The notes below the pieces were generated by a model. That model saw only the letters and a list, made by a program, of their open reading frames with translations. It searched no databases and had not been told where the DNA came from. A DNA stretch of 63,848 nucleotides from Parasitella parasitica NRRL 2501 (Eukaryota > Fungi > Mucoromycota): contig MU619324.1 of the NCBI GenBank assembly GCA_025201805.1, positions 39,834 to 103,681 of the forward strand, written 5' to 3'. This document shows, piece by piece, positions 59,004-63,848 of this stretch (positions within the stretch are counted from its first letter, which is position 1; each line of letters begins with the position of its first letter). Position numbers and translations under genes: made by a program.

Positions 59004-62000
59004 ACTGCTGAAGGAGAAAAGAAGTAGTAGTTTGTAAATATTACATTTGATTCTACGGCAAGTAAATGGAAAGCAATGGATATACGGTCACATATCCTGC
59101 TGAACACATTACTGTCATCTTACAAGAGAAGATTGGGTACCGGTATGGGAAAATTGACTGCATTGATTAGCAAGGACGAGAATACGATATAGCATTTTAT
59201 AATTTATTAAACAAGTACAAACCCACCAATAAGCCTTAGATCAATTAGTTGTTGGATGTGCATCTTGTCATAGACAATTGTCGCATGAACCCAAGGAAGT
59301 TTAATCAACCCGAGTACGTTTTTCCTGAAAAAATGAAATCAAGTTTTTAGCCAACAGCCCGTCGCCATAAACATGATGATCCAGGATGCACCATTGATTG
59401 TCATCATTTACCAAGCATTCGTTGCGGTCATCATCAAGGAAAACAGCCATCATCCAACTTTTTCTTGAGACAAGGGCTGAAAGTAGAGCCGAATCAAACA
59501 TTCTTTATATGTGCACACAAAGTATTCCAATTTGCGCGATTTCAAATAATTTTGCACAGGATTCAGCTGAATTGCCATCAAGTGGATGCATCGTGTTATT
59601 GTGGGGTAAAAAATTAATTATGTGTACATGTGTTGCTGGATGAAGACAGATTTTTTTTTTATAATTATGAGCCAAGACAGAAAATAAACTGCTATCACAT
59701 ACCTTAGAGAGGAAGGGTTCAATTAGTTCAAGTGGTTATTGAGTCTTGATGTTTTATTTGGGACTAACTTTGAAGACATGAATTAAGTGTACTACTGTCA
59801 TTTTGCAGTTTTTGAAAAAATGTTAAAGTAAATGATAAAGGACATGGTAATTGTGGTAATACTTCTGATGAAAGCTAAGAATCTTCTGAAGGAAAGAGAA
59901 ATGTCTCCCTAAAAAGATTTCAAGTGGGAATTTCTATATTTAGAGAAAAATATTTATTGCTTTGTTTTGTTCATAATGAAAATAAAAAGAGAATGTGTTG
60001 TAGAATAAGCTATCTTTATGTTCAAGGTAAGCGTTAAAAAAATTTTTACGGTTATATATTGGTGATTCTGCGTTTAAATGTGTCTGTAGACTTTAGATCA
60101 AAAATCTTTAATTGAATTCAGGAACGGAGAGTAAGGTTGAAGATAACACATTTATCTCCTTGAGATTTCATAAATTTCTATACAAATAATTTTTTATGAA
60201 TGTGTGTGTTATTCTGGTGGCAGATTGCTTCCTTTTTTCTGGCATTTCCTTATACCTTCAGATGATCTGAAGCTTTTTAGTGTCGAAGGCCTTGTCAGAT
60301 AAGTACCAAGCTGGGTTCTCTATATCCAGTTGCACAGAAGAGCAGCTAGTCAAAACTATATTATCTTTTCCATAATATTGGAACGATCAAAACTGTGCGT
60401 CTTTGTAAAGCCAGCGTAGACTTTAGGCGCCTGATTTTTTTTGTGTAACATATGCGAACTTTAGTGTGTCTTTGTCAGAAAAAAGACAAAAATTGTAAGA
60501 AAACAATGTTTAGTGATCTCAAACACAAAGAAAAGTAATTCAAAGTAATGCATTAGACTATAAGACATCTTTTGAATACATGTTTTTATTGCTTAGAGCT
60601 AGTTTTTGTACTTTTCAAGTTGACATCAGATGAAGGTAGCGACTTTTTTGACTTTTTTCGGAAAATTATTCTTCAAAATTGGAGCGTGAGATTGTCAGGC
60701 CAGGCACAGACATGCAAGTATTACCATTAGAAAGCCAAGAAGCATACCATTTGAATAAACTAGTTTGAAATTGTTTTTCTCTTGATTTGGTTAAGCTATG
60801 GCTCCTCAAAGCTAACACTTTCTCCAATAAACACAATTTTTCTCTGATAGCGGAGATTTAACGCTTCCAAAACCTGGAAAGAAAAATTCCTTTAGAAACT
60901 CAATTTGGACATTTCGAAAATTTAATTCCTCCTTTGAGGCAAGATATCATCTTCCGATACTATGCGTACCACGGCTGTCAGTCTATGATAATAGCTGTAT
61001 TTTTGGGCGCTCTACACGCTGGTAACATTTTATAATCCCTGTATGCTTATGGAAGTAATTCTGTTGAGAAAACCTCAAAAGCATATAAAGAGGGAAAAGT
61101 CAATATTTTGCTTATTCAGAGCGCATTTCCAGTCTTTCAGATCAAGGAATGGTCTTTTACGATCATTTTCCTCCAATATATGCTATAGTAAAAAGTTGCA
61201 TTTTTGAGGTCAAAATCGAGATTAATGCATAATCAATGATTTTGTATGCGTGGATACAAGGAAAAAATCGAAAAAATCCGTCATTTTGCATCGAAAAAAA
61301 AATCATGCTCAAATTGCACCAAAATCATATATAATATAGTCTTTTCCCAATGGATACTACTTTTCGTGTTTTCAGGGCACTTTTGATTATAAAAATCAAT
61401 CAAAAAATGACACACAAAGCTAAAGTTCTTGTTTTTAAGCAGTAAAAAATATCCATCTGGAGATGATATCACGTCAGTATGAATTCTAGTACATGACACA
61501 GCTCTATAAAGTAAGTGTTTTTGATGCCATGAGTATATCTTTCTTCATAGTAAAATGATAAAATAGGTGTGGCACATCTTTTCTCAGAAACTTTTCAGCT
61601 TTTATCAGAAATAGAAGGTTTGTTATCAGAAACCCTAATATATATTATCACAAACACCGTGACATTTATGATTTACTTGAACGCTTTTTTCAGAGACCAT
61701 ATGAAGACTGTATATGCAGGCCAGAAAGCTACCAAAATCTGCTAACAATATTTCTATTATAATTAGTGGAACATCTTAAAGTTAGAGGAAATCTTATAAC
61801 AAGCTGAAAATCCATGACAATTAAATTCTATATTCATTGAATACGATGAATCAGGGTCATATCGTGATGAGGTTGTTCAAACCAAAATCAATTGCGGGGA
61901 GGACATAAAGCTTTCCAACTATTTGTTTTCTCGCCGGTTGCACCATTTCCCGTTTTTCTCATTCAAAAAACTTTTAGAACATACTCCACATTTTTTCGTT

Positions 62001-62449
62001 ATAGTATGTAAACCTTAGTATCAGCAACAAATACTTTTGTTGTCATTACCTTAAAGTATAACCAAAAAGAAAAGTCTCTAGTTTCATACAGACATGAGCT
62101 CGGTTTGCCATCACCCTAAGATTTATCTTTAGAGCACCATGCCACCCTCATTTGCTTATGAAAGTACGCGAACTGACTTGGCACAGTGGAACTCAGTCGT
62201 TTCAAGGAGGCTTACTATGAGGCGTTTAGACAAAATGCTGACCATTGAAATTGAAGGCTTTAACTATTAACTAAAAAAAAAAAAAAAAAAAAAGCTCAAG
62301 TTACCCAGATTTTGTGATTTAGAAAATCTAGTTTGTTGTCATTACCTTTTTGATTTCAAAATTAAAACAGGAAGAAACAGTTATTGGTGAGAAAGGAAAA
62401 ATAACAAGCTTATATCTTCTGCGACAGGGTTTCTTCGTCACTGAAGCGC

Positions 62450-62745
62450 AAATTGGTCGAACTCTTACGTGCAGAAGCACGAGAGCCAAAATGCAGTAAA
62501 TCACTGTTAGCTAAGAAGATAAACGATCAAACTAGCGGCTGGTAAATTTTGTCCGTTTTGAAAAAAAAAAAAAAATGGCGATCTCAGAAAAATACTTGGC
62601 GGTTATCTAAAAATAAATGGCGCTAATTGGAAAATGATTGGTCGTTTGTTAGCAAATGATTGTCGTTTTAGGCTAACTCAAATTGGCGTTCCTATGTATT
62701 TATCCGCACTCGCTTTGCTGTACTTCGGGCTTTGATTGGACAATA
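62450..62745 (+). promoter_or_regulatory. Promoter-like motif cluster upstream of the tandem structured units
   Basis: Several ATTGG (inverted CCAAT) boxes, two AAATGGCG motifs and a duplicated AAATGATT(G)GTCGTTT in ~300 bp, with no downstream ORF. Confidence 0.35.
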
Positions 62746-62827
62746 ATTTGATACGCCACACTTTTCGTAACGCTCTATTAATATTAATTCTCAAGCCTCC
62801 ATTAACTTTTTTTTTTTTATCTTTCTT

Positions 62828-63023
62828 AGCCTACAATGACCAATGACTAGAGGGGGCATGCGTTGCTCCCTGACGAACCCGGCAAGCCTATGGAGGAACT
62901 TTGGAAGATAGAAACTCCCGCGTCTGCTTAATCCTCTAAACTTGAAGTCTTTCCAGACTCGACACTAACCCTTCAGTTAATCTGATCGGTGGTTATTGGA
63001 TTAATATTGTCATTGTTTTGGCT
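62828..63023 (+). ncRNA. Candidate structured ncRNA, unit 1 (174-nt core 62838-63011 plus closing stem)
   Basis: Core differs from unit 2 at only 3 positions; flanks AGCC-T-ACAATGAC / GTCATTGT-TTT-GGCT pair; internal stems CAATGACTA/TGGTTATTG and GGGGGCA/TGCTCCC. Confidence 0.65.
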
Positions 63024-63236
63024 TTCATCGGATGAGTAGTAGACCAATGACTAGAGGGAGCATGCGTTGCTCCCTGACGAACCCGGCAAGCCTATGGAGG
63101 AACTTTGGAAGATAGAAACTCCCGCGTCTGCTTAATCCTCTAAACTTGAAGTCTTTCCAGACTCGACACTAACCCTTCAGTTTGTCTGATCGGTGGTTAT
63201 TGGATTAATATTGTCTATTACATACATCTGAAGAAA
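63023..63236 (+). ncRNA. Candidate structured ncRNA, unit 2 (174-nt core 63042-63215 plus closing stem)
   Basis: Flanks TTTC-A-TCGGATG-A-GTAGTAGAC / GTCTATTAC-ATA-CATCTGA-A-GAAA pair, with a sequence unrelated to the unit 1 flanks. Confidence 0.65.
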
Positions 63237-63848
63237 CTTGTTTGGCTTAAAAAAAAAATCAAAATCAGGTGACAATATAATGTGTTAACTATTTTTTCTA
63301 ATTGTTCAGTATCTGCAATTCTGTAGTGACAAGTTGGTTTCCTTCTCGCCTTTGCATAGCAGTATCTTTGTATTTAGCTTCAACTACCGCAATACTGATC
63401 TAACTCTCTGTATGGCTTCCGCCACTCTTAATTGTCTTGAGAATACTCGTTTTGATGGTGTATCTATCTATCCATATAATTAAAAAAAATGGAGCCTGCA
63501 AACTTTTTTACACGCTTCGTAAAAAAAACAGTCGCTTGAAGCTCAAGAATAAAGCAAAACAAACCTAAAACAAGAAGAAATGGAGTTAACAAATGCTTTA
63601 GTTGGTTTTTTTCAGTTCCATTCCAGTTTGTTTAAATTTCGAGAAGTTGGCATTGAGCCAAGCACATCCTCAATTTCAGAAAAATACTTTAACACGTCAG
63701 AAAATTATAAGTAAAATATGTGCGTATGAAACAAAACATGTACATTAATTTAAAATTAAAAAACTCTCTAAACAAAGTGAATAATGTCGAAATTCGGGCG
63801 AAAAAGCTTGAATCTTTCGAAATTGGACATGGTCTAACCAGCAAAGGC

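Follow-up and report, generated by a model that had tools for sequence, protein, structure and literature searches.

Two nearly identical 174-nt modules, each closed by a flanking helix of its own, lie in tandem in a 63,848-nt stretch of the genome of the mucoralean fungus Parasitella parasitica (positions 39834-103681 of contig C88 in a 32.8-Mb assembly), called the window throughout. The cassette made by the two modules, their flanking helices (clamps) and the spacer between them represents a new orphan RNA family of distinctive design, which recurs in the genome. It features near-identical folded units, distinct clamps, no coding capacity and no match to Rfam. The account that fits it best, to which we grant slightly less than even confidence, is that of one Y-shaped non-coding RNA, in which two insulated identical modules would act as a bivalent platform by means of conserved unpaired blocks.

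The cassette and its clamps

A repeat search returned the two direct repeats of 174 nt each (62838-63011 and 63042-63215; 98% identity, spacing 204) which an earlier note on this DNA had reported. Differences between units are given below in unit positions, helices of module 1 in window positions. The units differ at three residues, at position 18 (G/A) and at positions 142-143 (AA/TG). Residue 18 faces U30 in an 8-bp hairpin, where the difference turns a G.U into an A-U pair; residues 142-143 sit in the loop of a 4-bp UCAG/CUGA hairpin. Structure is kept by these internal differences, as the note had it.

Complementarity between the two flanks of each copy, also reported in the note, is borne out. 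Contiguous pairs extend outward from the unit ends (8 for unit 1, 9 for unit 2), and more helices are found beyond small loops. Cognate flank duplexes have energies of -16.0 (unit 1) and -21.8 kcal/mol (unit 2), to be compared with about -5.5 and -7.2 for shuffled flanks. None of 1000 shuffles matches the cognate energies, and non-cognate combinations of flanks are far worse too. Folds of the two units with their flanks agree in a multi-branch structure which the flanks close, with energies of -58.0 kcal/mol for unit 1 (z-score -2.7) and -64.7 kcal/mol for unit 2 (z-score -3.3).

The spacer, which the note had described as fully used, supplies one strand to each clamp. It is in fact slightly over-used, as the T at 63023 serves both clamps, in GGCT at the end of the unit-1 clamp and in TTTC where the unit-2 clamp begins. 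Directly after the unit-2 clamp, the strand TTGTTT(T)GGCT occurs once more (63238-63247), so that the 5' strand AGCC..ACAA has two possible partners, and can enclose unit 1 by itself or the cassette as a whole. No open reading frame (ORF) of at least 35 amino acids is present inside the cassette, in agreement with the note.

Copies and sister families

A DNA search of the assembly found the cassette again on contig C45, as two tandem units carrying the same spacer and the same four flank strands, within a segment of 597 bp (62788-63386 in the window) which is 92% identical. A one-unit recombinant with a 5' deletion is found on C3, and a truncated unit with an internal deletion on C113. All these copies are referred to as family A. 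As the same flanks mark the copies on C45, C3 and C113, the two different flank pairs arose once and were then inherited. The flank pairs hence lose the value given to them in the earlier note, as evidence arising at this locus, and family A taken alone provides no independent evidence for selection on the flanks. This is supplied by families B and C.

A covariance model of the units (R1), searched against the genome, identified a tandem pair on C40 (family B), made by 185-nt units which are separated by a 28-nt spacer and 65-68% identical to the window units, and a degraded copy on C225. A second covariance model (R2) weakly touched a pair on C43 (family C). Units of this family measure 241 nt, are 98% identical to each other and 52-56% identical to the window units, and are separated by a 35-nt spacer. 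A degraded single unit is found on C52. About 8 intact units reside in the 32.8 Mb. Flanks outside the cassettes are unrelated among families A, B and C.

In the sister cassettes on C40 and C43 every unit is clamped, with different letters each time. This upholds the claim of the note that selection on RNA helices, rather than duplication, accounts for the paired flanks. In family B, AGGACAAC pairs with GUUGUCUU around unit 1, and the clamp of unit 2 measures about 19 bp. In family C, AACAUU pairs with AAUGUU around unit 1, and AGAGAAGG with CCUUCUCU, with one bulged G, around unit 2. Judged from its sequence, the unit-2 clamp of family A is homologous to that of family B: GUAGUA or GUAAUA pairs with UAUUAC in the inner helix, and the next helix shows one G-C to C-G flip and one G.U pair which is kept. 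The unit-2 clamps of A and B measure 18-20 bp, with small internal loops, the unit-1 clamps 8-12 bp. In whole-cassette folds both arms are closed by an outer stem, UCUUGA/UCAAGA in family B and CACUGG/CCAGUG in family C. About 40 nt upstream of the B cassette, the sequence TCGATGAGTAGTG (C40, L013 1243-1256) resembles the spacer word TCGGATGAGTAGTAG of family A, and is perhaps left over from a further unit or from an arrangement older than the present one.

Some blocks are common to the three families. Units start with (G/A)ACCA and end with GAU(U/C)AAUAUUGU(C/U), so that the termini of the window units are shared with the C43 pair. The block GACGAAC, which reads GUCGACAA in family C, and the block GUCUGCUU(A/G)AUC are conserved inside. 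The 13-nt end motif is matched 10 times in the genome, and its reversed control once. Of the 10 matches, eight mark unit ends, and the other two (C43:170935 and C60:11146) are regarded as due to chance.

Secondary structure and covariation

Seven units of families A and B were aligned under the guide of the model. Standard pairs fill 93% of the cells of the alignment, against 27-49% when partners are slid by 1-3 columns. Seven pairs are changed on both sides, a figure reached by 1 of 500 shuffles. In the comparison between families, compensatory changes are found in most helices, the flank helix included. RNAalifold, which had been suggested in the note as a check, was run on the same alignment deprived of the structure of the model, and gave the same helices and again seven compensated pairs. 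Family C keeps, by eye, P1, the long P2 hairpin and the P6 hairpin (helices are listed in Table 1), and has insertions elsewhere.

A near relative, found in two metatranscriptomes, differs at 12-13 unit positions. The pair G15-C33 is changed to A-U, A131-U153 to G.U and C133-G151 to U.G, the latter two preserving pairing on the + strand only. A helix proposed by RNAalifold, AGAU/GUCU, is broken in the near relative. Over all helices, 18 G.U pairs are counted on the + strand versus 6 A.C combinations. The preference for the + strand noticed earlier is thus found, and it is a modest argument, because the structure had been derived from that strand.

Identity between units of the same locus amounts to 98.3, 97.1, 93.5 and 97.9%, and falls to 91-92.5% between family A loci and to 52-68% between families. 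Each locus has changes of its own, which are present in both its units. The dimer with two different clamps predates the split of A and B, hence repeated homogenisation of the twins has taken place, for which gene conversion confined to the homologous part is the simplest explanation. The spacer is identical in 30 of 30 positions between C88 and C45 and shows no difference in a contig of one of the metatranscriptomes (X19), being mildly more conserved than the units.

Folding of the modules in tandem

The effect of the clamps was evaluated in folding calculations. With the native flanks of family A, the local P1 helices have probabilities of 0.93 and 0.89, and the cross helix, which joins the 5' strand of unit 1 to the 3' strand of unit 2, a probability of 0.00. 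When flanks and spacer are shuffled, local P1 probabilities drop to 0.07 and 0.04 and that of the cross helix rises to 0.67; in none of 30 shuffles are both units self-contained. The expected number of inter-unit pairs moves from 0.0 (native) to 22.4 (shuffled) in family A, from 0.0 to 13.7 in family B, and from 1.4 to 22.4 in family C. Within the thermodynamic model, distinct clamps let two identical modules fold side by side. Insulation of identical twins would explain the need for clamp sequences to differ.

Presence in RNA libraries

Expression data consist of assembled contigs, which show neither the strand nor the ends of the RNA. Two libraries, X8 (an oligo-dT plant metatranscriptome) and X19 (a soil metatranscriptome), contain the variant of the near relative described above, about 93% identical. 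The contigs cover units and spacer, and those of X8 part of the downstream region as well. One X8 contig is exactly 174 nt long and spans 62838-63011. This is the outcome expected from a de Bruijn graph for a repeat with branching flanks, and indicates that the near relative has the same unit borders. A third library, X1, is from the same species by identity, and is presumed to be RNA. Depth in X1 is 10532 for the contig common to both units, 4877 and 4723 for the spacer contigs, and 2163 for the downstream contig (63186 to about 63559). No back-joint was reported among X1 contigs. These depths fit a long transcript which keeps the spacer, with the limit that small processed products escape such data.

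An A10 tract is found downstream of the family A cassette and may explain capture by oligo-dT. A T6 run lies downstream of the A cassette, and T5 runs are found within 4 nt of the end of the B cassette and within 17 nt of that of the C cassette. Transcription by RNA polymerase III is possible in the light of these runs, but the evidence is weak and the X1 contig reads through the T6 run (63292-63297).

Comparison with known RNA families

The earlier note could not match the cassette to rRNA, tRNA, spliceosomal snRNAs, U3, SRP or RNase P/MRP RNA. An Rfam 15 search of 60000-63848 gave nothing at E<=1, and a search of 621 nt at E<=10 gave chance-level matches only, with no family at gathering score. 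The best of the latter are plant models of box C/D small nucleolar RNAs (snoRNAs), snoZ278 (E 0.34) and snoZ267 (E 0.78), which score 19 bits where their gathering thresholds are 36 and 43; both matches skip most of the model. Rfam gave nothing at the C40 and C43 loci either. No tRNA was found by ARAGORN, and a scan for bacterial promoters and terminators was uninformative. No description of the cassette was found in the literature. A 2025 preprint lists conserved long non-coding RNAs of Mucorales, and its main text offers nothing against which the cassette could be compared (10.1101/2025.10.01.679568).

Words of family A, such as CUGACGA, GAAAC, GGAUGA...CUGA, AAACUCCCG, CUAACCCU and ACUAAC...CAG, brought up hammerhead, hairpin ribozyme, box C/D, box H/ACA, 7SL, U small nuclear RNA (snRNA), telomerase template and intron readings. 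The hammerhead, box C/D, box H/ACA, telomerase-template and branch-point words are not kept in B or C or in the near relative, and these readings were dropped. The 7SL helix-8, U snRNA and hairpin ribozyme readings were dropped on the ground of Rfam only, as no such match was obtained.

Box C/D snoRNAs carry box C (RUGAUGA) and box D (CUGA) close to their 5' and 3' ends, respectively, beside a short terminal stem, and these features are kept among relatives. GGAUGA...CUGA is found only in the unit-2 flanks of family A, B and C being without both, and the internal CUGA words of A read UCGA or UUGA in B. Box H/ACA snoRNAs are made by hairpin, hinge (ANANNA), hairpin and a tail with ACA 3 nt from the 3' end. 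The units differ from this layout, as their last bases are UUGUC, their fold is multi-branch rather than made by two hairpins, and their sole ACA (unit positions 126-128) is not kept in the C45 and C40 copies. The hammerhead core (CUGANGA and GAAA around three helices, with cleavage after NUH) has counterparts in family A (CUGACGA and GAAAC), but the first word is UCGACGA in B and the second is GGAAC in the near relative, and Rfam gave no match. A tRNA or a tRNA-derived short interspersed element (SINE) is contradicted by the ARAGORN result and by the number of intact units. A solo long terminal repeat (LTR) was discarded since the ends of the segment are not TG...CA and no target duplication is seen.

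A 23-codon ORF starting at about 63410 was considered as a small peptide. It lies in a segment (63410-63481) which is shared with C225 (L015 about 1705-1760), past the end of the homology with C45. The C225 copy differs mostly by substitutions which change amino acids, and the ORF is probably not coding.

Interpretation

The cassette is best read as the gene of one non-coding RNA of roughly 420-470 nt, which would be transcribed from the + strand. The RNA would be folded as a Y, with a short outer stem bearing two arms, each made by a long clamp helix followed by the 174-nt multi-helix module (P1 to P8). A conserved bulge of 9-10 nt (AUUAAUAUU) would be placed between clamp and P1. Gene conversion would keep the two modules nearly identical; as identical modules would pair together, clamps of different sequence would force them to fold separately. 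Likely contact sites are the blocks GACGAAC, GUCUGCUUAAUCC, UCGAC, and the 3' block ending AAUAUUGUC, the last predicted to be unpaired except for its final three bases (GUC), which start the clamp. Conservation of these unpaired blocks makes a bivalent platform for a protein or RNA partner the most likely function.

Several observations count against this reading. The assembled contigs leave strand, RNA ends and intactness of the transcript unproven, and the nature of X1 as an RNA library is a guess. The minimum-energy fold of family A pairs the 5' strand with the spacer copy, not with the outer stem. The alignment was fitted to the model, so that covariation leans towards the structure, and it comes from seven sequences of one genome. 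The near relative is about 90-93% identical in the flanks too, and hence reveals no constraint specific to the units. The fold is least certain at the centre of the module (P3/P4), where an alternative helix (50-54/71-75) would cross P4. Outside this genome and its near relatives no homologue was found by pattern scans of metagenome, bacterial/archaeal and viral collections, a result of little weight since these collections hold few or no fungal genomes. The protein or RNA partner of the platform is putative.

The same transcript could be a precursor, an option which we hold as less likely. A double-strand-specific endonuclease (Rnt1, Dicer or another RNase III-like enzyme) would cut the clamps and free two RNAs of about 174 nt, perhaps circularised. 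The unit-2 clamps of A and B have the size used by RNase III enzymes (about 20 bp), conservation across families extends to the unit ends (GAC first, AAUAUUGUC last), and the layout recalls bacterial rRNA operons, in which the flanks of each rRNA pair into a helix around it. Processing of this kind had been put forward in the earlier note. Selection on RNA helices, on which the proposal was built, stands; release or circularisation of the units is hypothetical. X1 speaks against it, as the depth of the spacer contigs is close to that of each unit and no back-joint was reported, though contigs and poly(A) libraries miss small products. Moreover, the unit-1 clamps are short, no AGNN loop of the yeast Rnt1 type is present, and the outer stem would be superfluous in a precursor. 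The outer stem of B and C fits an intact Y-shaped RNA at least as well.

A self-cleaving activity of the modules, as ribozymes of a new kind or viroid-like units cleaved near the ...UUGUC end to give unit-length RNAs, is improbable. Small ribozymes typically combine, as seen here, variable closing helices with a core and junction nucleotides which are conserved, in a tandem layout, and every unit ends with GUC or GUU beside a helix. Yet no known ribozyme family was matched even at E<=10, the hammerhead-like CUGACGA and GAAAC of family A are not kept in family B or in the near relative, and cleavage is purely hypothetical.

We also give little credit to a cis-acting role, as a tandem aptamer or structure of the untranslated region of a neighbouring gene, or to a role as RNA partner of a nuclease-like gene. 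Tandem aptamers with their own closing helices exist in bacterial riboswitches (glycine), but the unrelated flanks of the three families disagree with a role tied to a neighbour. The ORFs found near the C45 and C40 cassettes, where a nuclease was looked for, contain no Pfam domain, and one neighbour resembles, by eye only, a reverse transcriptase of the long interspersed element (LINE) type.

A DNA-level element (a non-autonomous transposon, a foldback element or a palindrome inserter), transcribed incidentally, is likewise improbable: partial copies are dispersed (C3, C113, C225) and an 11-12-bp direct repeat, TTGTTT(T)GGCTT, brackets unit 2 and its clamp, but the copy number is very low, the inverted flanks which would be the 'terminal repeats' vary between units and families while the interior is conserved, which is the opposite of a miniature inverted-repeat transposable element (MITE), helices contain G.U pairs, which are mismatches in DNA, and family A copies share flanks like segmental duplicates, rather than lying at new insertion sites. 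A MITE or SINE with many dispersed copies had been named in the earlier note as what would refute it; the searches gave about 8 intact units, with shared flanks in family A.

In a further reading, speculative and rather unlikely, the modules would form a catalytic or self-processing RNA of a new class, or else provide the RNA core of a ribonucleoprotein particle not described so far and specific to mucoralean fungi. The bulge and the 3' block (AUUAAUAUUGUC) between clamp and P1 would then be the active or recognition site, and clamp-insulated twins could be a general design for bivalent RNAs in the lineage.

Relation to known systems

In bacterial and archaeal rRNA operons, stems formed around the rRNAs carry RNase III or bulge-helix-bulge sites. 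As in these operons, several RNAs of the same transcript are each surrounded in the cassette by a helix which their own 5' and 3' flanks form, and the helices differ in sequence. In contrast to rRNA operons, the cassette encloses identical copies, resides in a fungal host and lacks the bulge-helix-bulge motif, and cleavage is here only hypothetical. Dimeric Alu RNA, made by two 7SL-derived arms, similarly has tandem similar arms closed by their own ends and a short linker, and an A-run follows the family A cassette. The cassette differs in having no 7SL similarity (as judged by Rfam), a very low copy number, no target duplications, no A-run in B and C, and arms which are kept nearly identical.

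Glycine riboswitches resemble the cassette in that two homologous domains of the aptamer type follow each other, each with a conserved core and a closing helix of its own; unlike them, the cassette has no evident regulated gene and no known ligand-pocket signature. We know of no precedent for eukaryotic riboswitches except those binding thiamine pyrophosphate. Polycistronic snoRNA and microRNA-like clusters of fungi and plants are also made by several structured RNAs per transcript, and use helices for processing, but box C/D or H/ACA features, typical of the snoRNA clusters, are not kept across the cassette families.

Features and surroundings of the cassettes

Features of the family A cassette in the window are listed in Table 1.

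Table 1. Elements of the family A cassette and of the conserved segment which includes it (window positions)
Feature	Position	Strand	Basis and remarks
Whole conserved family A segment	62788..63386	+	Cassette, about 40 nt upstream and about 150 nt downstream; 92% identical to C45 over 597 bp, with sharp ends; outside flanks unrelated
Unit-1 clamp, 5' strand (AGCC, U, ACAAU)	62828..62837	+	Pairs with 63012-63023 in the minimum-energy fold; also complementary to 63238-63247
Module 1, 174 nt	62838..63011	+	Repeat search and fold; helices backed by A/B covariation
Module 1, P1	62840-62848/62991-62999	+	
Module 1, P2	62851-62858/62864-62871	+	
Module 1, P3	62883-62886/62941-62944	+	
Module 1, P4	62893-62897/62932-62936	+	
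Module 1, P6	62945-62950/62955-62960	+	
Module 1, P7	62968-62970/62988-62990	+	
Module 1, P8	62973-62976/62982-62985	+	
Module 1, conserved, mostly unpaired 3' block	62998-63011	+	Its first two bases belong to P1, its last three (GUC) to the beginning of the clamp
Unit-1 clamp, 3' strand (first part of the spacer)	63012..63023	+	Fold and flank duplex energies; spacer 30/30 identical in C45
Unit-2 clamp, 5' strand (remaining spacer)	63023..63041	+	Homologous, by sequence, to the family B clamp; compensatory flip
Module 2, 174 nt	63042..63215	+	Helices of module 1 shifted by 204
Unit-2 clamp, 3' strand	63216..63236	+	Fold and flank duplex energies
Second UUGUUUGGCU strand, candidate 3' strand of an outer stem closing the cassette	63238..63247	+	Read from the sequence
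A10 tract within the conserved segment	63249..63258	+	Present in C45 too
T6 run, candidate RNA polymerase III terminator	63292..63297	+	Kept in C45

Upstream of the cassette, the interval 62560-62670 contains a short dispersed repeat (words AAATGGCG and TGATTGTCGTTTT). Many contigs from all four runs match it at 85-92%, with ends running into unrelated sequence, and the repeat probably is a small transposon family, separate from the cassette. The intervals 60079-61547 and 62613-62755 are 82-86% identical to C3 (L009 7647-9092 and 7235-7376, respectively), in a different order. The change of order denotes a segmental duplication which has been rearranged; it surrounds the cassette and lies in an AT-rich stretch of >4 kb devoid of ORFs.

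On C40, about 0.8 kb downstream of the B cassette (L018 6435-8055), two overlapping ORFs resemble, by eye, the reverse transcriptase of non-LTR (LINE) elements, with no Pfam match at E<=0.01. On C45, ORFs of 187 and 102 amino acids are found downstream of the cassette copy on the minus strand (L008 5356-6320); by eye they are similar to the zinc-finger/N-terminal part of hAT-type transposases, and gave no Pfam match. An uninterrupted T run of roughly 100 bases is found on C43 at about 171.3 kb (L028 about 1830-1920), and C60 features a satellite-like array of GATACG-type short repeats, with a period of about 60-70 nt (L032 1700-2000).

Implications

To our knowledge, almost no non-coding RNAs have been described in early-diverging fungi beyond the universal ones. 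The cassette adds to these fungi an RNA supported by covariation and present in RNA libraries, of which at least three diverged families reside in one genome. Its design provides a testable rule for placing identical RNA domains side by side without misfolding, and points to a protein or RNA partner which would bind the conserved unpaired blocks. Should the modules be catalytic, or be released as circles, they would represent a new RNA class; otherwise, the cassette is still an orphan RNA family useful to annotate the genomes of Mucorales, human pathogens among them.

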